NCBI GenBank assembly: GCA_904063045.1
Contig: CAJFCJ010000006.1
Coordinates: 4,046,408-4,110,407, forward strand
Source: Dimorphilus gyrociliatus
Taxonomy: Eukaryota > Animalia > Annelida
DNA: 64,000 bases
Reading direction: 5' to 3'
Below the pieces are notes generated by a model. It was not told the DNA's origin and made no database searches. It saw only the letters and a list, made by a program, of their open reading frames with translations. The position numbers were made by a program, and so were the translations under genes. Of the stretch, positions 15,141-48,500 are shown one piece after another (position 1 is the first letter of the stretch; each line of letters opens with the position of its first letter).

Positions 15141-16172
15141 CTAAGGATTGTAGACAAGAGCTACCCTGGCTATTGAACTTCTACAAACTGGACAGAGTTT
15201 TGGCGAAGGTAACGCTTCATAGCATTCAACACATATACAAACATGTCCGCACTCTAAAATTATCAAATCTCTTGGATTGCTCAAACAAACAGTGCATGAA
15301 TTGTCAGCTGCAACACTTTGGTCTGGTCTTCTCTTTCTTAATTCAAATGCTTGTTTCCTGAGGTCTTCAGCTTCTCTGTGTTCCTTCCAGTACCTATAAT
15401 ATTTTTTTCCTGCAGAAATAGCAACGCCAGTTAATACTATTGCACTTATTACCATCGTTGCTTTCCAAAACCCCTTCCAAAATGAATATTCTTGCACTAT
15501 TTGCTCTTTGGATGATTGTGTAAAAATAAAAGGAAAATTATCCGGCGGCGAAAGTATAGCTTTCTTTCCATCCGGAGATAAACTAGCTTTACCTATTACC
15601 ACAAGAGCTGAATTGAGAGGTAGCATGGATTCGGTCTCCTGATAGCCTTTGCTAACTTCTCCGTGAAATCTAGAAAGAACCTTATCAAAAAATCCAGTGT
15701 CAGCAGGTCTAATAAAATTATCGTATGTTTGCCTTAAAACGCCTTTTAAATCGTCTACCCTAAAAGCATCTTCCACTACAATATGAGCTTCTGTACCACT
15801 CGATAAGCCGAATTTGCAGAATTCTGTTTTATCTTGAAGAGTAGATGTTCTATCACTCCAGTATCCTTGTATTTTCTGGGTCTTATGCTCCCTCTTGAGA
15901 GAATTTCTTATAACACCTTGAATTTCTGGGTGGTACAACGATTTCAGAGGTGGTTCAAGGGCGCGTACAGTTCCAGAAACTGACACAAGTTTGATCGTTG
16001 CATTATCAGTTTCTAATAATTTCTTCGTCAGAGATTCATCAGCGACGAAGTCTTCAGTTTCTTTTAATTGCGAATATTTTTTTTTACTTGACCAAAAACC
16101 CAATGAACTGCACAGAAAGACTAGACCATCGGCAAGAGCAATATACAGTTCAGCTTTACAGTCAGGTAACAT
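15141..16172 (-). CDS. MUL1: Mitochondrial E3 ubiquitin/SUMO ligase (GIDE domain, two TM segments, C-terminal C3HC4 RING); intronless CDS
   Basis: 343-aa ORF with GIDE-like 'FHGEVSKGYQETESMLPLNSALVVIG' and RING 'CTVCLSNPRDLIILECGHVCICVECYEALPSPKLCPVCR'. Confidence 0.93.
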   Translation of the reverse strand: MLPDCKAELYIALADGLVFLCSSLGFWSSKKKYSQLKETEDFVADESLTKKLLETDNATIKLVSVSGTVRALEPPLKSLYHPEIQGVIRNSLKREHKTQKIQGYWSDRTSTLQDKTEFCKFGLSSGTEAHIVVEDAFRVDDLKGVLRQTYDNFIRPADTGFFDKVLSRFHGEVSKGYQETESMLPLNSALVVIGKASLSPDGKKAILSPPDNFPFIFTQSSKEQIVQEYSFWKGFWKATMVISAIVLTGVAISAGKKYYRYWKEHREAEDLRKQAFELRKRRPDQSVAADNSCTVCLSNPRDLIILECGHVCICVECYEALPSPKLCPVCRSSIARVALVYNP

Positions 16173-24500: not shown

Positions 24501-26985
24501 TTCCACGGTAACTCCATGTTGATAACGATCAACCATTTTTTGAATAGTGTCTTTGGATACACCATGTTTATTTCTAAGGACTAATTCCTTAACATTAAAT
24601 CTCCATGGCGTATCAGGTTCCATTAATTCAATATGATAATCGTACTTCATACCCTAGAATTTGACAAAATAACAAAAAAGTAACTTGAGGCGTGTTACTA
24701 AATGATGATCAAAACATACCATGGCAATATAGCTCCTCATTTCCCACGACATAGTATTGGTGTTATCTATTATAATCGGATTTTTCTTTTCGGTTATCGC
24801 CACTTTAGCTAAAAATGTAAAATTTTTAATATACTACTTACGATTTATATTTTTCTAAATAGTATACTTCTCGTCTGATTCCATTCGTGAGCTTCTCCTA
24901 ATTTATTATGATCAAATTCATAACGATTTCCTCTTTGAAAGTAGTCATCACTTGATAGAATGACACCAGAATCTCCTACAATTTGTTGAGCAAGCGTTGT
25001 TTTCCCCGAGCCAGGACATCCCCGTAGTATAACCATAACCAATAAGTTTTGAGTTTTATATTGAGCTACTATAACTTTTGCCACGTCTGGTGAACGCTCA
25101 TAACTAACAGTTAGAACTGGTTGGATAAGGTCTGGAAATGATCGAGTTGGCAGAAGTCTGTGATTTAGCTTGGGGGCGGTCGTTGACAGTGCATTCCAGG
25201 CGAATTGTGCGGGGGTAGCATGGAGCGAGTTGGTTGTTGTATTGGTGAACGATGGACGAGCATAGGAGGAGGCTGGGATATAGGGGGCGGGACGAATGGG
25301 TGCGGAAAAGGGGGCGGCAGGTGGGTAGGCGGTAAGCAGGGTGGCGGCGGCAAAATGCGATGATGCGTGTGGAGAGACGCGGCCGGCAATCGGCCCTGCC
25401 ACTGGTGAGAGTCTCGCATACTCGACGTGCGAGGCAGACATGCCGCGTTTTGTAGCAGGGCCCGCTGGAAAGGGCTGAGGGTGCAGAGTTGCCGGCGTAG
25501 CTACTCCTACTCCACCCACAATCGTTGAAGTACAAACTGGTGTTGCAGTTCTTGGAACAAATTCTGGTGCTGTTATGGAAAAAGTTGTCTTATCTTCAGC
25601 CATTGTAAAAGTAGTTTGTTCTTCATAGTCGTCATTCTGAGAGATGTGGGGTGAATTCGATCTCGAATTGCGCTCGCTATTTGGTAAAGATGACACTTTG
25701 TCACTTAATATATTCTGCAAGAGCGAAGCTGTAGAATTAGGTAAACGATCATCCGATTGATTTACCGTCATTCCCTCATCTAGAAATTGATCGATGCCAA
25801 CCAGGCGTTCTTTTCGTCTTTTTTCAAATTTCGATTTGTGAACAGTATTAGGAGATGATATATGTTGTGGAGGCGAATCATCCGATTTATCGGAAATTCG
25901 ACCACAAACATCTTTCATTCTTTCACCGTCGCTTTCAGGGCTATACTGCTTTGCTACTTCCAACTTTTTTACAAATCTTGGTGGCAAATTTTTCATATGC
26001 TTCATAGCTACCTTCATTTGAGACTGATACTGTTTAGCTAGTGCTGCTCCTTTATCTTTCTTACCAGAGCGCCTTTGGCCATCTTTTGAATCTGACCTAC
26101 CATCCTCATTTTCTCCGTCAGATGAGCTAGTGTTCCCAGCAGATATTACTTGATCACTTCCGAGAGTTATCACTTCCTCAATTAACTTTTCGAGGGACTC
26201 CCTTTCTTGTGGGTCTAAAGACACATTATGTTTCCTCCTCGACTTCTCTGACTTTGGAGGAGTTCGGTATCTGTCAGATGTTTCATTTTGTGCATTATGT
26301 ATGCTAGTAAATGAATCAGATTGTCCCTCAGCAAAGAGTTGCTTTCTAGAGCTAAAAGGAGTTGTTTCAGCACTACTACTTGTATTAAACTCGAATGTTT
26401 TTGGGACGTCAGCTGAAAATAATGATGAACCGGAAGGGAAGGCTGAAGGTTTACCGAAAGTGTTGAATGCTGCTAACGCATCACTATAATCCGTATTCAT
26501 ATGAGAGTTAAAATAAGAGGATGGATTTACAATAGTACTGGGAGTTTTTGGAGATAAGAAAGGTAACTCATCGTCATTCTGAGACCTATCCTTATTAGGT
26601 TTTAGTGGAAGGCGGGAAAATCCTTCAGGTGTTCTGGAAAGGTTTGATTCCGCCATTGTCTCTAATTGTTCAGTGGCTTTTTCCACTGTTCATAAAAAAC
26701 GAATTATTTTAGGTTCAAATGTCATATATATCACTCACCATTAAAATTACAGTTTTGCAGAACGTAATACACTACTTCCCCATCTACTTTATTTTTAAAT
26801 TTTTCTTGAAGATCATTAAATGATGCGTCACGACTAGCATCATATCCAGCTGCAATAGCATCATTTGTCCATATATTTGCAGTAACTTTCACTGAATCTT
26901 GATTTTCGCTTTTCCAATTCGCACCGATAAGATTTGGCTTATCCGGGCTTGGCACTCGTGTACCTTTATTTCGTTTCCGTGGCAT
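21590..26985 (-). CDS. N4BP2: NEDD4-binding protein 2-like (CUE, polynucleotide-kinase P-loop, further CUE domains, DUF1771, Smr endonuclease domain)
   Basis: Start MPRKRNKG. CUE 'KVDGEVVYYVLQNCNFN/VEKA', P-loop 'VMVILRGCPGSGKTTLA', DUF1771 'YKDFRAEAANYNEKRKECLQKA', Smr 'LDLHYLHVNEAIE...VITGQGNNS...KIKPAVLNYL'. Stop at 21590-21592. Confidence 0.92.
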
Positions 26986-28510: not shown

Positions 28511-31500
28511 ATGAGTGCGACATTCTCGATAAAATATCCCGAAGGATGCAAAGAAATAAGTGATGATTTGAGCGAAGAAGAACTTCATCGAAGACTTAAA
28601 GTATTTAAGCAAATTTAGCATCTGTTTGTGTCGATGTATATAGTGAACATTTTGTTAGGTACTGGCGAAAGCCTTGCAAGATTTTGGAGAGCAAGAAGAC
28701 GAAAATGCACCCGCCGACGCACAAATGTTCGATGGCCTGGCTGAACATCTAGCTAGTGAATGTTTCCTGTCTCACCGGAGTAGAGATATACGTATATATG
28801 TTGCTTGTAGTGTTGCCGACATCCTAAGAATCAGTGCTCCAAATAATCCTCTAAAAGATGTCAGAGTTATAATGGTATGTAATTACATTTTTTTGGTAAT
28901 CAACAAGTAGACGTTCTATTTATTCTAAAGGATGTATTTAACTTCTTTGTGAGAGAATTGAAAGGTTTAGCTGATGTTAATGGACCGAATTACAAAAGAT
29001 ACTTTTATTTACTTGAAGTAAGAACAATAGTTTTAATGACTATCTATTTATTACTGATATTATAATTAAAGGAAATCACTTGGTCCGGTGCAATGAATAT
29101 TTTACATGAATACGATGGCTGTATACCAATTTTTTGTAATCTTCTGAAATTCGTTTTTCAGTGCATTTCGTAAGTTATTCACATTTGTATATTACAACGG
29201 AATCTCAGTGATATTAACACTTCAGAAGCCAACATAGTAAACAAATGACAACTCTATTTATTGAATTATGTGGTACAATACTAAATGAATTTGATACCAT
29301 TCCTCCTGAAATTATTGATATAATCCTTACACGATTGGTGGAACCCAATAAGGTTTTTCATCATCATTACAATATTTATTTTTTAGAAAGAAATTAATTT
29401 TGATATAATTTACAGAGTAATGCCCCTCTGTCATATAATATAGCAAAAAGTGTCGTAACTAAATGTGATGATATCTTATCAAGATCATTGGTTCAGGTAT
29501 TCTAATTTATTTTAATTTTTGTACGGCTTTAAAAAGTAAATTTATTACAGTATTATACGAATATCATTTTGTTGGGAAAGAAAGCGAATTTAGAACTTGG
29601 AGAGAAATATTACGAAGCATTCTACCAGTTATTTTCCATATCCCCTAACGTTGTTCAATTAGCCTTATCTCAGTTTGAATTTAAGCTAAAGGTAATCACG
29701 TTTGTTATATGAAAACAGATAAATTTATCGCATTATTACCTGTGTTTTGTTAGAGCACGGATGACTCAGACAGAAAAAAAGCTACTCAACTGTTACTTCG
29801 AATTTTTTCCTCGAATAGCTATGACGAGACTGAAAATCACAAAAATCTTTGGTTTACACTTCTAGGAAGGTAAAAACGGTTCTATCTAATTTTCTTGTTT
29901 ACTTATTAGAATATTGTCCTATGACGAAAAGTTATAGATCGAGAGACGGGGTTGCCTTTTTCTCAACTAGTATTCATCTCATATCATTTTCTTTTTTCAT
30001 TTTTCATTTCTAAGTATTAGTTGAGGATAACGGCAACTAGTGGTCTTTGTGAGTGTGAGATTATGAGATCTGAGGACAATTAAAAGTTTTAATCCTAATA
30101 TTTCTGTTTCTTTATAATCCCCACAACTTATCACCATGATAATAAATAAATCCATATATAGGTTTAACGACAAGGAAGTTGCTATTAGAAAACTATGCTC
30201 TCAATTTGCTCAAGAGTTCATCCTAAATAAACCAGATCTTATCGATGAAATAACTGATCATCTATCTCAGAGAGTCCTTGACACTGACGAAACAGTTAGA
30301 TATGAAACAGTGGCGGCGATCATATCAGCAGCCCGGAAAGATATTAAAAAAGTCAGCGACGAGCTCCTTGTTTTAGTTAAAGAGAGAACTCTAGACAAAA
30401 AAGTTTGTAAATACTTTTAATATAGTTCTGTTTATTTTTACAAATTAATTCACAGATGAAAATTAGACGAGAAGCGCTAATGGGTCTCGCACAATTATAT
30501 AAGGCATCATGGAATAGTAATGATTCTGAGTCTATTGAAAGATTATCATGGATAAAGCAGAGAGTTTTATACTCGTACTATCAGCAGCTAAACGACGACA
30601 AAATTTTAGTTGAAAGAGCTTTTCAAGGGCATTTAGTTCCCTACAACTTAGATGTGCCAGAGAAAGCTAGAAGATTATATATTCTTTATGCAACAGTTGA
30701 CGAAAGAGCTATTAAGTATGCAAAATAGATTTATTCTAAAAATTTTAAATAAACAAGTGTTACTTTGGCTACAGAGTTTTGAATGAAATTTTTCGAACCC
30801 AAAAGAAATTTCGAGATTTCACCAGTCAAATTCTAGACTTATTGAAGAATGGCTTAAAAACCGAAAGAATACAGCATGAAGTGAATTCCAGATTACAAAC
30901 TTTGAGTAGTGAGTACACTAAACCTTTATCTCTAGAAAAAAACTAGCTTTATTTTGCTATATTAGATCAACTCCCTGAACCGACCAAAACTTTAGATTAC
31001 TTGAAAAAATTAGTTAAAATGATTGAAGCTGACAACCGATTACGAAATTGCATAACCAAGCTGCTTGATGATGACTGCAGTTGCAAGAAGAGTGAAGAAT
31101 ATACGGTAAGAAAGCGTTATTTTAAACAGTTTAGTATTTACTTTTTCAATCAACAGAGAGAGATCCTGAAAAAAATGGGCAATGCTGTTCCAAATAATCA
31201 TTTATACAATTATATTAGGGTATGTTAAAAATAGGCATACTGATTTCGACTGTAACATGTTCTTAACATTAGAATTTCGTTGAACGAATTGCTTCGTTGA
31301 TGATCGATGCGACAGTTATGAAAGAATTATTCACTTTGGTGGACGATGCTATCAACGGCACTGGTGATGCTCTGGAGGGAGTTAAAGATGCTGCAAAATC
31401 GGGAATACAGTTACTTCAAGTAATTCAATTATCTAATATAAAAGCATTTTTACATCTTCTATTTCTTTTTTACAGACTTTAGCACCAGTTTTTCCTCATT

Positions 31501-34500
31501 GTTTCAAAAACGAAGAAGTTCTTGAGTTTCTCACAACTTTTGTAGAAAACGAAGATGATGATATAGGTTTGTTTATTCGTGTTTCATATTCATTATGCTG
31601 ATTTCTCAATTTTACTACAGCTTGCACGACTTTACAAATTTTCTGGGACATTGGTTCTGATTTGCAAAAGAAATTCCCAACTGTTTTTCGAGATCTCTTA
31701 CCCATATTGCAAAGATTTGCCAAGTGTGGAACTGCGAAACAAGCAAAATACGCCGTGAAGTGTATTGAAAAAATGGACAAAAATAATAAGTCAAAACTTT
31801 ACGCCCCAATATTCGATGTAAGTATTTTTTTCACTTTGAGCTTGAATTACTTAATTCACTATATACAAACACAATTTTTTTTATAGCACATCGAAAAACA
31901 TCTAGATGTTGAATCTTCATCATTTTTGGTGTCAATTGTTGTCATGGGACATGTAAGTCGCATTTGTCCAGAAGAATATTCAGGAAGAGCTAGAAAAGTA
32001 GTTGTTGATGTTATCGTTAAGGATCTTTTAATGGTTGATCGAGTAAGTTAGATATTTATTATACATTTTAGATATAAAAACTTCTTTTGTTTTTAGAGCA
32101 ATGGACGACATTCCAATGAAAATTGGTATAGCGATAATCTTGTGTCCTACGAGACATTGTGCAAGGTATAAAGAATTTTCTATCCGTATAAAACATTGTC
32201 CAATGATGAAAATTATTAAGCGAGAGACGGGGTTACCTATCAACAACTAATATTCACGTCATATCATCTACATATTTCATCTATCATTTCACAGTATTAG
32301 TTGTCTGATATGGTAGCTTGTGGTCTTTATGAGTTATGAGATTATGAGATCTGAGGACTTTTCTATGAAAATTTTTTTCTTTATCAAAATTGCCAAATAC
32401 TTCAATATCCTATTTAAACAGATGGAAGGGATGAAGATGATGGTAAGATGGCTGCAAGGAAAACAATCTGATAAGAGCAACATAGCCACAAGCACTCTAC
32501 GCTTATTATTCACTGTTATCAAACACGACGGAGACTTGATGGAGAAAAAGAAAATAAAGTGAGACACAGAAATATATATACAATTCTTCTTACTCAAACA
32601 TTAATGTCGCAAATTTTTCTTAGTAAACCGGAAATGGCTAGATTACGATTGCAAGCTGGCTGTTGTATACTAAAGATAGCAGAAGAGAGGAATTACTACG
32701 AATTAGTTAGCAACAGTTATTTCAACATGATTGCATTTCTATTGAACGTTTGTACACTCATATGATCATTTGTAGCAATTTTTTCTATCTTTTAATGCTT
32801 TCAGGATACTTGTCCAGAGGTGAGAAAAATATTTGCAGACAAACTTTTTAAAGGACTCTTTTCCTTGAAACTACCTTTGGCGTACATGGCGATTTTCTGT
32901 CTCGGAGCAAATGAACCAGATAAGGACATTAAGACACAAATTAAGACATATTTACACAATTGTATAATGAAACGACGAACCCTTATGAAAAGTAAAACAA
33001 CTGGAAGTCAAGCTATTGTTTTCCAATTGCTTCCGGATTATGTTTTGCCTTATGTTATACATCTTTTAGCTCACGATGGTGACCTATTAGACAATGAAGA
33101 TGTAGAAAGTTTAAAAAATACTAAAGAGTAACTATATAACATTCATATTTTTCTTATTAATAATATAATATCTTACAGATGTTTATGGTTTATAATGGAA
33201 CCATTGATTATGAAAAATGACCAGTATAGTTCTGCCTTCTATAGGCAAATGATTGAACAAATAAAAACATGTAAAGATGCAAATGACCCTGAGAACGAAA
33301 CTTTGAACAAAGTATGTTGAACTTGTGAATTCCACGCGAAAAACTGAAACTAATCGATCTATTTTCAGAAAATATACGCAGTGTGTGATTTGGCGATGAA
33401 TATAATTTTAACAAAACCCACAACGGTAGACATAAGAGAATTTCCTGCAGAACCTCTTCTCCCTTCAAAATTATTTCAAAAACCAGATGTCGTAAGTAAA
33501 ATTGTATAAATTATTCGTAAACGTTATAAACATTTCTTATCCAATTTTTCAGCCGACTACAAATACAACTATTTATCTACCAAAGGAGCTGCAGATCTCA
33601 TCTAAACAAATAAGCAGACGTCACAAAACTGAGGCTAAGGAAGAAGTTAAAGTAAATGGTGATAGTGAACCAAAGGCAAAGAAACGCTTGTCAGACGATA
33701 GTGCACCAGATGTCAAGAGACAAAAGAAGGATGACTGGAAACCAGTAGACTCTAGTTCAGAAGAGGTTGCTGAAGGGGAAGATGATGTAGAGCATTATAC
33801 TCCTCGACCCACAAGAAGTGGTAGGCAAAAATCAAAAGAAATAAAAACTCCTGCCTTGGGTAAAGATTATTCTGAAGAAGACAATGAAGAGGAGGAAGAG
33901 GAAGAGGAGGAGGAAGAGATAGAGGAAATAGAGGAGGAAAGCGTTATTGAAGAAAAACCCGCACCCAAACCTCGTAGAGGGCGAACAAGGAAAGCATCTG
34001 ATACACCTGTTAAAGGTCAGCGGGGGAAACGTCGGAAAAAAGAAGTTGTTAATGAACCAGAGAAAGAGGAAGATGATGATAAGGCAACCGATGGGGACAT
34101 TGATTCTGACGAAGACATTGACAAGAAGGCTTCAGATGAGGAAAACGATGCACGAGGCAGACGAGGCTCACGAGGGAGAGGACGAATAGCTAACGCCGCA
34201 AGAAAGAAGTCAACACCAGTTAAAAAGGATAAACAAACGAAAAGGTAAATATAATTCTTTGAGCTGTCTTACATAGTGTAACAACAATGTTTTTTAAAGG
34301 TCAAAAAGAGTACAAAGACAGAAATCTTCCTCCCAAGATCTTGATCAATCAACATCTGTTGAGTCTAGTCCTGAAAAACCAACTAGACACAGGAAAGTGG
34401 GAAGGCCAAAAAATCCACTTATTTCCAACTCAAAAACGACGCCATCTGAAAGAAACGCCGTGACTTCGCCAGTAAGGTAAAGAAAGAGATCAAATAATTA

Positions 34501-42516: not shown

Positions 42517-45500
42517 TCAGACGAAAGATGAAAAACCGGGTAAAGGGGCTCGGGATCCAGCCTTGTTACTCATAACAACATGGCCAGCATTCAGAGAAAT
42601 TGCGTAAGGAGATTCGGACGGTTCACTATCCGTGTAATTGTAAATTGAAGATGAGGACGCCGCTTGGTTAATATTATTTTGATTTAAGTTATTTCTCGGA
42701 TGATTTGGCGGTAACGGTGGCGGAATATTGGGCGGTGATTTGTATTTTTGAGCAGACCCATTCCAGCTTTTTCTATTCATATTGACTGCACTTGTAAAGG
42801 GAGGTGGAAATTCATCATCCACATTTTTCTCACTAAAATCGCTTAAGGTGGATGCTTTTCCACACGAATTTTCATCTGAACTAATTGAGCGTTTGGCTAA
42901 ACTACTACGATCATCTTCAATTTGTGATTTACGGCAGCTGTCGTCATCATCATCATAGTTTACAGCTGCCGGTGATGGTCTAGGCGGACTACGTATATAG
43001 CCTGGGTGGCCGTTGCGAGCCCCCTTTCTTGACCTCTCAGAATGTCTTGATCTTATCGATCGCCTAGAATTTATTGTACCGAAACCATCTTCATCTTCTC
43101 TGTCACAATTGGTCATAACGGTGGCCATAGACGTCATTGATGTTGGTGATATGACCGCTGTAGGCATCATGTCTGCGTGCTTCTTTTTCAATCGTCTACT
43201 CCTTCGACCGGTAAAGCAGAGAATAGTGACAATGAGTATAATCAGGATAAGAGCAACTAATGAGATAATAGCAGCAAACCACCATTGTTTATAGAATTCT
43301 TCGGTTTTAAAATCAGGAGTTTGCAAAATGGGAGATGCTTCACTAGCGGAAGATATTCCAATTTTGTTGAGAGCAAATACGCGAAATACATAATCGGTTT
43401 TCGGGTTGAGGCTGTAGAAAGGTATTTTTACAATCGGTTTAGCGATCATATCACTGTTTGTAATTGTTAGACGTTCAAACTGTTCCCATTTCTTGTTCCC
43501 ATATTCTTGTTTCTGGATTATATATCCAGAAAGGGTTCGTTCGGAACTCAATGGTACATTAAACCAACGAAGATTGGCATAGGTGTCAAATGTGTCCAAT
43601 TTTAATTGAAATGGAGGCTTAGGGCTTCCTGGTACGGGACCAATGGTAAAGTTTTTGGATCTTTTTTCTCCCCAACCAACTTTTGTCTTTGCTTGGACAC
43701 TGAAAATATAGTTAATATTTTCTTCAAGGTCCTTTGCTTCGTGACTTGTTTTCTTATAGTCAACATGGTTGATCACTTCTTTGCCATAGGCTAAAATTTA
43801 AAAAAGGTGGATTAGCGTTATAAAAAATATTCATTCAAAAGTAATTTCTATTATTTACCGAATAACCCAGTTTGCGAGTATTGTATTTTATATAATTCAA
43901 TAACTCCATTTGGTTTTTCTGGCGGAGTCCATGATAAGTTTAATGATGACAGAGAAGTTACTATAAAACTGAGTTCTCCAGGCTTCCCAGGAACTAGAAA
44001 ATTTTATTAAATGTTTATTATCATCAATGAAAGATTATTTTCTGACTTACGGCCTTGTTTAGTACGCTGTGTAACCGGAGGGGTTTGAGGTCCTTCGCCA
44101 GCAGCATTGAAAGCTAATACAGCTATATCATACAGAGTATACATCTCCAGATTTTTTAGAGAAGCCCTAAGAGTTGCTGATGGAACGTTAATTGCCAAAA
44201 CCGTACGATCTTTTTGGGCAGCTATCCAATAGAGAACCTTATAGCCCAAAATATTACCATGTTGTCCTCGTTTCGGAGGTGCTTTCCATGCTAGCTGAAT
44301 TTCAGTCGAGGAAATCGGCTCAGCTGTTAAATCCAAAGGACTTTCGCTCGGAATAGCTTCACCTACATAAATATCTATCGGCTGTGACCATGGGCCATCT
44401 CCCATAGAATTTCGAGCTCTGACTCTAATTTCGTAAAGTGTATGCTTTCTGAGATTTTGTAATTCAATAGTTTTTGCATTATCAACAACAGGTTGATTAT
44501 AGCCTGTAAAAATTTAATTAGGTAAATTTTTCATGTTTTTCTTTTTTAATTAGACCAAAATAAATACTTACCAGCTTCCGAAGTTGGCCACTGCAACGGA
44601 CCGTATTTAACTACGTAAGAGCTTATTCTGTTAGAGTTCCATTCGGTTTTTGGGGGATCAAGCCAAGAAACTCTTACTGAACTTTCAGTGAAAGGTTGAG
44701 CTATAATATTACTTGGAGGAGCAGTCGGTGGAGCTGGACTTGTTGTTTTTGCTTCAGTACTCTTACTAAAGACACTTCTCCCTACATCGTTGTTTGCGGC
44801 AATTCGAAATTTGTATTTGGTAACCGGTTTTAGGCCATTTATAACTGCCCTAGTGTCTGAGGGATTTATATCAATATTTTCTTCTTTCCATACACACTCA
44901 TTAAAGTTGTCAACGAGGCAGGATTGTACAGTGTAATTTCTTAGTTCATAATAGTCTACCATTTTAAAACTCCAGAATAGACTCAAACTATAAGCTCTTA
45001 TCTGAGAATCCTCAATTCTAAGATTTTGGGGAGCAACGGGTTTCAATCTATTTTCTCTAACCGTTACTTTCGCCGAAATTTCTTTACCAGTTCCATTTTC
45101 GTTTTTAGCCGAAAGGCGAAACTCGTAAATAACATTCCACGAATCAATTTCTTTCCTTGCCACATAAGATGTTCCTCTAATCTCATCCTCAGAAAATTCG
45201 ACACTATTCCCAGAATGCAATTTACGATATTTTAGACTATAGCTAATATCTTTGCCGTTCTTAAATTCAGGCGGACACCATTGGGCAGTTATACCGCCAA
45301 TGTCAACAGTTGGGAAATACAAACACTTTGGAATGCTCGGAACTGTCGAAAATCAACAAATAAGATAAAATCGTAACTATATTGTTACAAACCATCTGAA
45401 AAAGTTTCGACGGGAGAATTAGATTTCATATACACTCCGTCACCTAATCGAGTAAAAGCTGCTACAGCAACTTCGTAGGAGACGAATGGGTGAAGATTGT

Positions 45501-48500
45501 ATATGTAAGCAGATCTAGCATTTGGGTTATTAACTTTCAATATATCCAAATCGGTTCCTTTATTTACTGATCGTTTACGTCTTTCCCTCTCCTTGGTGTA
45601 TTTAATCTGATGAAGAATTTATAAATAATAAAATTTACAAGTTTATATATGAAAAAAAACTGTAGAACAAGATTAAATCTTATTGGCTATACTACTGACT
45701 TTTTCAAGATTTACGCTCCTATCGATATATAACCCTTTTAATCATAAAAAAAATACTCAAGAACTCACTTTAAAACCGAGTATTAAACCATTTTCTTCAC
45801 CCTTGGGTATATCACCCCATGAAACTATGATAGTTGTAGAATTTAAAACTACCACTTTAACATTGGATGGTCCCCTTCCCGGAACTGTATTATGTTAAAA
45901 ATTAATATATGCAATATTAAAGAGCTTATATGTCTATAAACAAACCCGATTCGAAGGTTCTTTCACTAGCTTGTGGGCTATATTTTCCATCGCCTTTAGC
46001 ATTAAAAGCAGCAATTCTCACGTCATATTCAGTCCAAGGTTTCAAATTGTGTATTGTGTACAAACTTGCGTTGTCGTTTTTAACTTCAATCTTTTCGTTG
46101 AAGGTGCGATTAATGCCGTATTGAATCTTATAACCCCTTTCATCTCCGTTCCATTGCTTTTCGTCAAGGGGCTGAAATGTTTAAATTAATTAAAACTTTA
46201 GTGAAATAGTCTTCGCCAATACTTACAGTCCATCTGATTGTGAGGGAGGTTTCATTAAATGCTCTTACTGTCACTTCAGTTGGAAACGACGAAGGAATAG
46301 ACTGATCAGTTGTGAACCACCGAGTAGGAAGTGAAGGGCTGCTGCTTCCTTTTATGTTTTCAGCCAAGAGTCTTAGGCGGTATTTTGTAAAAGGTAACAA
46401 ATTGAATACTGTAATGGCTTGAGAATTTGGACTCGATATCTTTTCAATAACGAAAAAGTCCATATCTTCTCGACCATCTATTTGACCCTCAACGATCCAA
46501 AAATTAATTGATGTGTAGCCATCAAAACCTGGGGTAAACTTTATTTGGACTGATCGGTCCTGTAAATCGCTGATTCCTAATATTGTAGGAGGCTTGGGTA
46601 GTTCTGGTGGTTCACCCGTTTTGGCTTCTATTATTCTCTTAATACCTAAGCCTTTTCTGGACTGGGCTTGTATAGATATTACATAACTTGTTAGGGATTG
46701 CAATTTGCTTATTTCATATGATCGAGTTGATGGAGGTAGCCTTTTTGACTCTTGACTTAAGTTGTAGTCTTTCCGTTGATAAGTAATAAAGTAGCCGATT
46801 AATATGCCATTTATGCGTTTAGGAGGACTCCACGTAATGTTTACCGAGGTATCCAACAAAGAGTTAAAGGATAAATTTTCAACTGCATCTGGTACTAAAA
46901 AATGATAAAAATTTTATTAAAATCCTGAAAATTGTAAATCAGCATTAACTTACTGTCTTCTTTGGTTCCTATAGTTTTATTAGCAGACGCCATGCCAATA
47001 CCTCCGCTTGTGAATGCGGCTATAGATATGTCATAAGAAGTAAATTTTGCCAAGTTGGCTACAGTATAAGATTGATTCCTATATCTAGATTCTAGTGGTA
47101 TCATGTATGTTTTGTTTAAAAATCTAGCATAATCTGAGGCTGGCTTCGGATATAGAGCAATATAATAGCCCAGAATGACACCGTGATGGTTTGGAACGGG
47201 CGGGGGATTCCATTCAAGGCGAATTGCTGTTGATGATATTGCTTTAGATGACTCCAAAATTGTTGGTGGTCTACTAGGAGTACCCTCTTTCGTTTTAGCA
47301 GATACACTCTTGCTATATACTCCAACGCCTCTTTCGTTGTAAGCAGCAATTTGAATGTTGTATGTAGAAAAGACAGTAAGGCCATCTAGAGAATAAAGAT
47401 TCCTCTGTTCGCTTACTTTTGTAATATTTTCTAGATTCCAGTCTTGATAGCCTTTTAGCTGATATTTTATAATATATCCTTTTAATTTGCCGTTCAATCC
47501 TTCCTTATTAGGCGCTTCCCAACCTACAATCAATTCTGTAGAAGTTCTGGGTTCAACGCTTACAGCCTGGGGTGGTTCTGATGGTGGCTGCTGAGGTAAC
47601 GTTATCGTCTTGCTCTCTCGGGAGCCTTCTCCTTCTCCGGCTCCATTCACTCCTCTTACTTGAAACTTGTAAGTAGTAGCTGGCTTCAAATTCCTTATTT
47701 GATACCAGCTAGGGGAGGGTGGAACATCTCGAACTAAGTGTTCCCATGGATAGTTTTCACCTACAAAATTTTTCTGATGAATTAAGAATACTATGAAGAA
47801 ATTAAAATTTCGCACCTCTATCAGATACTCGTTGAGCTTGAATTGAAACAGTTTGAACTTGACTATTTCCATCAAAAATGATCTTCCAAGAAATATTCAC
47901 AAATTTTTCCTGTAAAAGTTCGATTTTTTCTATTGATAATGTTGGAGTTTCGATAACTATCAGCTCTGCCATCCTACTTTCATTTCCTGAAATGCTGGTA
48001 ACTTCACATTTGTAACTGTAAAAGGCAAAATTGGTAAATAACTTGGCATTTTTGTAATATACTTTTATTTCCTACCTCCCGACATGCTTTGTGTCAACAT
48101 GCTTTATAATCAATGATCCTTCTGTACTAATTGTAAATACGCCTTTTATGTCAACCCTCTCAAATGGATCGGTGCTCAATGTTCGAAAGTACCAAGTCCA
48201 CCTCGGCTTTGGGATATTATCATCATAGCTAGCACCACATTGGAAATTTGCTTCATTTCCTTTAATTACTCTATTAGTTGTGGGTGGCTTGATAATGATA
48301 GTACGTTCTAAACACATTAAGAATTTTAATAATAATTTTTATTAAAAAATAGTTTGTCCTTACTAAACACTATCAAATAGGTACTCTTTGTATCCCATCC
48401 TTTGGAGTTGGAGGCGTTGCAAATATAGGTACCCATATCATCTAAAGCAGTATCTCTCAACTTGATAGTATTTCCCAAAACCTCGATTCGTTCTGAAGTG

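Follow-up and report, generated by a model that had tools for sequence, protein, structure and literature searches.

Two SNORD97-like box C/D RNAs in PDS5 introns of the annelid Dimorphilus gyrociliatus, predicted guides for methylation of the elongator tRNA-Met wobble base

RESULTS

The PDS5 locus and its two long introns

A 64,000-nucleotide stretch of the genome of the annelid Dimorphilus gyrociliatus (assembly GCA_904063045.1, attributed to this species in PMC10735302; contig CAJFCJ010000006.1), here called the window, carries on its forward strand the gene for the cohesin regulator PDS5. Two introns of this gene hold paralogous sequences with the organization of small nucleolar RNAs (snoRNAs) of the box C/D class related to SNORD97. 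A preliminary description of this DNA had named PDS5 as the host gene and had predicted that the paired elements guide 2′-O-methylation of the wobble base C34 (Cm34) of elongator tRNA-Met. The host was confirmed by tblastn, the Patella PDS5 protein matching the window at 28529–33602, and by the Pfam domain PF20168, found in exon open reading frames (ORFs) of a close relative. From these matches, mRNA contigs and the ORF, the approximate coding span was placed at 28529–34248 (+ strand), its end being that of a low-complexity C-terminal ORF.

Spliced PDS5 mRNA was found in metatranscriptome contigs covering part of the gene (30239–32675). These contigs showed that eleven GT..AG introns between 30402 and 32624 are spliced. 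Ten of the eleven measured 51–69 nucleotides (nt), and the remaining one matched intron B (32166–32421, + strand) exactly, the RNA contig skipping precisely 256 nt with GT..AG borders. The only other long intron of the gene, intron A (29870–30161, + strand, 292 nt), lies outside the coverage of the RNA contigs, and its borders were set from the GT at 29870 and AG at 30160–30161, the reading frame, and tblastn alignments of PDS5 proteins; the flanking exons matched about residues 317/318 of Patella PDS5. The two long introns reported among otherwise short ones were thus confirmed, intron B at the RNA level. Each contains one element in sense orientation. Aligned to each other, introns A and B have a mean identity of 80%, almost all of it within the elements. 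It would seem that introns A and B are long because they contain the element, and not the reverse. The genome paper of the species gives a median intron length of 66 bp and nowhere mentions snoRNAs or tRNAs.

The metatranscriptome run that held the spliced D. gyrociliatus PDS5 mRNA, at ≥99% identity, is labelled as coral; the worm evidently lived with the coral sample.

Anatomy of the two intronic elements

The paralogous elements are each about 165 nt long and lie on the + strand. Copy A (29914–30080) was matched by the Rfam family RF01291 at 29914–30079, with a fold z-score of −3.3. Its predicted fold is closed by a terminal stem, UUGUCC/GGACAA (29914–29919 with 30074–30079), which is followed by the C box AUGACGA (29921–29927), with C instead of the consensus U at position 5 of RUGAUGA. 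A long internal hairpin (29943–30047) presents an apical loop at 29975–30012 that is 82% pyrimidine and contains UCAU repeats. The hairpin is followed by a C′-like box (30048–30054), recognized by motif scan as a UGU bulge, then GA, then GU, which pairs in kink-turn (K-turn) geometry with the GA at 29941–29942, just 5′ of the hairpin. The guide element, AGAUUAUGAGAU, occupies 30058–30069, where G30065 is the fifth base before the D box CUGA (30070–30073). This D box ends 88 nt before the 3′ splice site.

Copy B (32196–32358) was matched by RF01291 at 32196–32360 and has the same arrangement. Its predicted fold contains a terminal stem GUCC/GGAC (32198–32201 with 32355–32358), the canonical C box AUGAUGA (32203–32209), and an internal hairpin (32224–32327) with an apical loop at 32255–32292 that is 68% pyrimidine. 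The C′-like box (32328–32334; a UAU bulge, then GA, then GU) faces the GA at 32222–32223. The guide element is again AGAUUAUGAGAU (32339–32350), and the D box CUGA (32351–32354) ends 67 nt before the 3′ splice site. In the genomic DNA the corresponding 12-mer AGATTATGAGAT has exactly two occurrences in the 64-kb window, starting at 30058 and 32339 of the + strand. All components of the homologous elements (terminal stem, C box, hairpin, 12-mer and D box), as well as the distances of 88 and 67 nt, were found where the preliminary description had placed them.

Assignment to the SNORD97 family

In E-value mode, Rfam ranked SNORD97 (RF01291) first for each copy, with matches spanning the full length of the model. 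The printed consensus of RF01291 is the vertebrate form, with an AUGA D box and a central part without modelled structure. Its 3′ end contains the identical AGAUUAUGAGAU, then AUGA, then GGGCAA, and its terminal stem is similar. The UAUGAG motif upstream of the guide and the U/C-rich centre also aligned to this consensus. Both copies show the traits of the family: C and D boxes closed by a terminal stem, the exact guide, and a sense intronic position. The GA dinucleotides of both boxes were intact in all four copies of the window and its relative. A pyrimidine-rich internal region is present, as in the family, but the tract is much shorter than in vertebrates and is held on a stem.

Guide element and predicted target

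Human SNORD97 and SCARNA97 were shown experimentally to direct jointly Cm34 of elongator tRNA-Met(CAT) (Vitali & Kiss 2019, PMC6601510), and the account of this work in the preliminary description was accurate. In human cells, single deletions lower Cm34 only partly, and the host genes are spliced normally after deletion of the elements (PMC6601510; for splicing, legend to Suppl. Fig. S5). The guide of the annelid copies was compared with the tRNA-Met(CAT) genes of 13 species printed in Suppl. Fig. S4 of the same paper, among them human, dog, chicken, lizard, turtle, Xenopus, zebrafish, Ciona, Drosophila, Bombyx, Arabidopsis and Brassica, in which GTCTCATAATCT is invariant. Against these genes the pairing described earlier, 11 Watson–Crick pairs plus one G-U pair in which C34 faces the fifth base upstream of box D, held throughout. 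The Drosophila-type tRNA-Met arm allows two more pairs, up to 14. The predicted guide/tRNA-Met duplex had an energy of −15.7 to −17.6 kcal/mol.

Conservation in a close relative

A phmmer search with a PDS5 exon query identified an exon-sized ORF that was 93% identical, all other PDS5 proteins being about 50% identical or less. This ORF was present on three Logan contigs (L001–L003), with the same gene order as in the window. The relative carries both copies in the same two introns, at L001:9484–9650 and L001:11684–11846 (orthologs of copies A and B, respectively), with the guides at L001 9628 and 11829. In these copies the distance from the end of the D box to the 3′ splice site is 65 and 70 nt, respectively. 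A D box 65–88 nt before the 3′ splice site is in the usual range for splicing-coupled C/D snoRNAs.

The two window copies and the two copies of the relative were aligned (alignment A2). The sequence GAGAUUAUGAGAUCUGA was invariant in all four, as were the UGA/GA cores of all box motifs. Between species, identity was 68–70% in the elements, 36–45% in the rest of the same introns, and 78% in the adjacent exon. The C box of the relative's copy A is the canonical GUGAUGA. The terminal stem covaries, CC/GG being replaced by UU/AA in the relative's copy B.

Identity was 78.8% between window copies A and B and about 69–70% between orthologs; within the relative it was 61.5% between the two copies. 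Among the loops, that of window copy A most resembled the one in the relative's copy B (89.5%). With four sequences of 165 nt, this is no more than a hint that gene conversion has acted between the introns. Conservation specific to copy A or copy B across the species was sought in the alignment as a sign of division of labour, and was not seen; all four sequences share one architecture.

The internal hairpin

RNAalifold analysis of A2 returned the terminal stem together with the long hairpin. A predicted self-hairpin inside the invariant guide was dropped, and 29 pairs were kept. Across the alignment 96.6% of the cells in these pairs were paired, and 13 pairs had changes on both sides. In controls with the 3′ partner slid by 1–3 columns, 31–50% were paired and 0–4 pairs had changes on both sides, and none of 1000 column shuffles reached the observed pairing values. 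Between the two window copies alone, six pairs were compensated and none was broken; five of the six lie in the internal hairpin.

The base of the hairpin had a constant form in all four copies. GA stands directly on its 5′ side, and the 3′ side has three unpaired bases, GA, and two bases able to pair back. Beyond the GA comes a G-C pair in three of the copies and an A-U pair in the other. Because this geometry matches the general K-turn consensus, the hairpin base reads as a putative internal C′/D′ K-turn, with the hairpin as its canonical stem. The stretch between box C and the D′-like GA was not conserved in A2, which argues that there is no second guide. The apical loops of the four copies are 38–40 nt long and 68–82% pyrimidine, with repeated UCAU.

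The loop of copy A includes the anticodon-loop-like sequence AUCUCAUA, which was considered as a pseudo-target of the guide. This was rejected, as the match was not significant against 500 shuffled loops; the corresponding fractions for loop/guide duplex energies were 0.07–0.42 in the four copies.

In the vertebrate SNORD97 consensus, the complementary blocks GACGC and GCGUC flank the pyrimidine-rich centre and are unpaired in the Rfam structure line. These blocks are possible counterparts of the annelid hairpin base.

Related RNAs in metagenome contigs

Metagenome contigs were searched with a pattern of a C box, 100–130 nt, the guide, and then NTGA, which gave 49 loci. Most were set aside as probable chance or coding matches with ATGA, TTGA or GTGA. 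Four distinct RNAs at seven loci, all with a CUGA D box, were accepted: L010/L018, L012/L054, L038/L057 and L044. In all four, a long internal hairpin separates box C from the guide, and the arrangement of GA, stem, and then NNN-GA was seen by eye in each; L012 has a canonical CUGA D′ box. L038/L057 scored 26.2 bits for SNORD97. Among 48 predicted pairs compared between L010 and L018, three were compensated, ten had one-sided changes and none was broken. The internal hairpin is thus probably general among non-vertebrate members.

Individual relatives had features of their own. Directly upstream of the SNORD97-like RNA of L038/L057 is a SNORD79-like C/D snoRNA (33.6 bits, below threshold), and the two RNAs form a snoRNA cluster in a eukaryotic metagenome contig (L057:2692–2956(+) and L038:1218–1482(−)). 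The internal hairpins at L010:1441–1587(−) and L018:1523–1669(−) are unusually rich in G-U pairs (22/55 and 16/53 pairs, respectively). They recall the G.U/U.G wobble stems described as Cajal-body signals of vertebrate box C/D small Cajal body-specific RNAs. The RNA at L044:453–623(+) has a hairpin whose loop, about 48 nt long, consists almost entirely of pyrimidines; it is the closest parallel to the annelid architecture.

Other genes of the window

Just upstream of PDS5, on the opposite strand (24845–26686(−)), a 613-amino-acid ORF was found with the start of a C-terminal P-loop kinase domain (AAA_33). It resembles an N4BP2-type gene, and the relative keeps this neighbour (L001:4385–6241), with a DUF1771 ORF further on. 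An intron-less gene at 15141–16172(−) encodes a MUL1-type mitochondrial E3 ligase with GIDE and RING domains; its best named relatives (Lingula, Paralvinella) are only 32–34% identical, and public gene calls place it between TMEM70 and the tRNA-splicing endonuclease subunit TSEN34. Several large ORFs with fibronectin type III and DSCAM C-terminal domains at 42517–47875(−) are probably exons of a DSCAM-like cell-adhesion gene.

DISCUSSION

Function of the two RNAs

Taken together, comparison of the sequences makes it likely, in our judgement strongly so, that both elements function as guide RNAs of the SNORD97 type and direct Cm34 formation on elongator tRNA-Met. In the mechanism we propose, exonucleolytic trimming of the spliced PDS5 intron up to the terminal C/D K-turn would release each RNA. 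Snu13, Nop56, Nop58 and fibrillarin would then assemble on the RNA at two K-turns: one would be the terminal C/D motif, the other the internal C′/D′ motif with the long hairpin as its stem. The 12-nt element before box D would pair with positions 30–41 (GUCUCAUAAUCU) of elongator tRNA-Met(CAU). This pairing would put C34 opposite the fifth guide base, and fibrillarin would therefore be expected to make Cm34.

Several observations weigh against this assignment. A scan of the window at Rfam gathering thresholds reported nothing. In the Rfam comparison suggested by the preliminary description, SNORD97 was the leading family and its guide was identical, but the scores were 24.3 bits for copy A and 18.8 bits for copy B, below the gathering score of 45. 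We read this threshold as an operational and not a biological criterion, given that the printed consensus shows the vertebrate form. The stability of the copy B fold alone was not significant (z = −1.1). The deviating C box of copy A (AUGACGA) may make this copy work less well, and the same may apply to the relative's copy B, which has UUGAUGA and a terminal stem entirely of A-U pairs. No tRNA gene was found in the window or in 14 other loci examined. No stable snoRNA was seen in the RNA data, which are the assembled contigs of one metatranscriptome and contain spliced mRNA only; a run search with copy A alone listed no RNA run, and no small-RNA run was listed.

It could be that only one copy is functional and the other is slowly decaying, with no joint function like that of human SNORD97 plus SCARNA97. 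The variant C box of copy A, the weak A-U terminal stem and UUGAUGA of the relative's copy B, and the lack of copy-specific features conserved between species are in keeping with such decay. However, the weak features fall in different copies in the two species, and both copies are kept in both species with guide, D box, K-turn motifs and compensated stems intact. We regard a single functional copy as unlikely. Stable C/D RNAs might also have another main role, with a target in rRNA, small nuclear RNA or mRNA, or with a chaperone or protein-binding activity through the pyrimidine loop, so that pairing with tRNA-Met would be incidental or secondary. The apical loop with its UCAU repeats is indeed conserved between window copy A and the relative's copy B, and human cells with both SNORD97 and SCARNA97 knocked out have no detectable growth or proliferation defect (Vitali & Kiss 2019, PMC6601510), which leaves the selective value of Cm34 uncertain. 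On the other hand, a single long block, made up of the tRNA-Met antisense element and box D, is fully invariant across the four copies, vertebrate SNORD97 and the metagenomic relatives. Upstream of the D′-like position a second conserved guide is lacking, and a search among stable human RNAs found tRNA-Met as the only target (Vitali & Kiss 2019, PMC6601510). A different main role thus appears improbable.

The elements could instead act in cis, for example as hairpins that bring the splice sites of long introns together where splicing is tuned to introns of about 60 nt, their C/D motifs being relics of a decayed snoRNA. The gene indeed has no long introns besides the two that hold them, the splicing of the species is adapted to short introns according to its genome paper, and the spliced-mRNA contigs showed no stable RNA. 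A relic, however, would not keep a 17-nt guide and D box invariant in two paralogs and two species. Nor would it be expected to keep both K-turn motifs and the terminal stems, the latter through the CC/GG to UU/AA change, while the rest of the intron is 36–45% identical. We consider a purely structural role in the introns very improbable.

Origin and host shift

When PDS5 introns of other species were compared, as had been suggested for related species, both copies were found in the close relative and none in Tubulanus (a nemertean), Patella (a mollusc) or Drosophila setifemur, whose PDS5 loci contained no GATTATGAGAT and gave no Rfam match. PDS5 was thus rejected as the ancestral host. The position of intron B is common to Patella and Tubulanus PDS5; intron A is absent from Tubulanus and ambiguous in Patella. 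Because the guide is absent from those loci and the position of intron B is shared, the RNA would have moved into PDS5 within the dinophilid lineage. From these intron positions, at least one of the two introns (B) would predate the arrival of the snoRNA. The two copies would have arisen by duplication within the dinophilid lineage.

The hairpin of the annelid and metagenomic RNAs, together with the GACGC/GCGUC blocks of the vertebrate consensus, raises a broader and more doubtful scenario. A stem-presented pyrimidine loop with a K-turn hairpin might be the ancestral module of the whole SNORD97/SCARNA97 family, the loop binding a pyrimidine-tract or YCAY-type protein that sets localization or access to the tRNA. 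The Cajal-body signal would then be an elaboration, and the annelid copies would have been kept alike by gene conversion for dosage. We put this forward tentatively, as a possibility that we do not favour.

Significance

What is new here is the annelid member, its occurrence as a pair within a single host gene, the lineage-specific use of PDS5 as that host, and a hairpin model backed by covariation. The preliminary description had overrated the novelty, since SNORD97/SCARNA97-like candidates outside vertebrates had already been reported (Vitali & Kiss 2019). The finding adds the first annelid (spiralian) member found of the only eukaryotic snoRNA family experimentally shown to modify a tRNA, and it indicates that the family was duplicated independently outside vertebrates. 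The host gene is not fixed: besides PDS5 in the annelid, EIF4G2 and LARP4 serve as hosts in human, and one metagenomic relative belongs to a snoRNA cluster. The structural result is the more useful one: the covarying hairpin, with its putative C′/D′ K-turn base and its pyrimidine-rich loop, offers a testable model for the centre of SNORD97/SCARNA97.

Knowledge of Cm34 itself is unchanged by the finding. The earlier proposal that tRNA-Met modification is tied to E2F-type expression of PDS5 was speculation, and a regulatory link between cohesin and tRNA modification has no support beyond simple co-transcription. Angiogenin is a vertebrate enzyme, and protection from angiogenin cleavage therefore cannot be carried over directly to the annelid.

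Comparison with known systems

Archaeal box C/D small RNAs resemble the proposed annelid role in that Cm34 of elongator tRNA-Met is made by a C/D ribonucleoprotein (cited in PMC6601510). They differ in being about 60 nt long, symmetric double-guide RNAs that are not intronic in protein-coding genes, and no shared ancestry with the eukaryotic family has been established. Closer to the annelid RNAs are the SNORD97/SCARNA97-like candidates with an invariant antisense element reported in insects, Ciona and flowering plants (Vitali & Kiss 2019, PMC6601510; Suppl. Fig. S3C). Like the annelid copies, these are non-vertebrate C/D RNAs with a D-box antisense element against tRNA-Met. Compared by their description only, they occur as one copy per genome, against two in the annelid, and include no annelid or other spiralian.

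Human SCARNA97 (SNORD133; LARP4 intron, Cajal body) shares with the annelid RNAs the guide, the predicted target and the status of a second paralog. Both also contain an internal stretch rich in pyrimidines; SCARNA97 requires its own for localization to Cajal bodies (PMC6601510). SCARNA97 is 216 nt long with an unstructured pyrimidine tract of 93 nt, whereas the annelid loop is less than half as long and is carried on a stem.

Human SNORD97 (EIF4G2 intron, nucleolar) has the identical 12-nt guide before box D and a terminal stem of the same kind, UUGYCC...GGRCAA. It also shares the UAUGAG-type motif upstream of the guide, the pyrimidine-rich centre, the sense intronic position and the single guide. 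The D box is the canonical CUGA in the annelid, compared with AUGA in the SNORD97 Rfam consensus; the annelid RNAs are longer (about 165 nt versus 142), and the host is PDS5 instead of EIF4G2. In their central part the annelid RNAs have a long hairpin that covaries and carries a pyrimidine-rich loop of 38–40 nt, whereas the vertebrate centre is described as unable to fold (legend to Suppl. Fig. S2, PMC6601510). Finally, the human paralogs lie in two host genes and are of early-vertebrate origin, while the annelid paralogs would reflect an independent duplication inside one gene.

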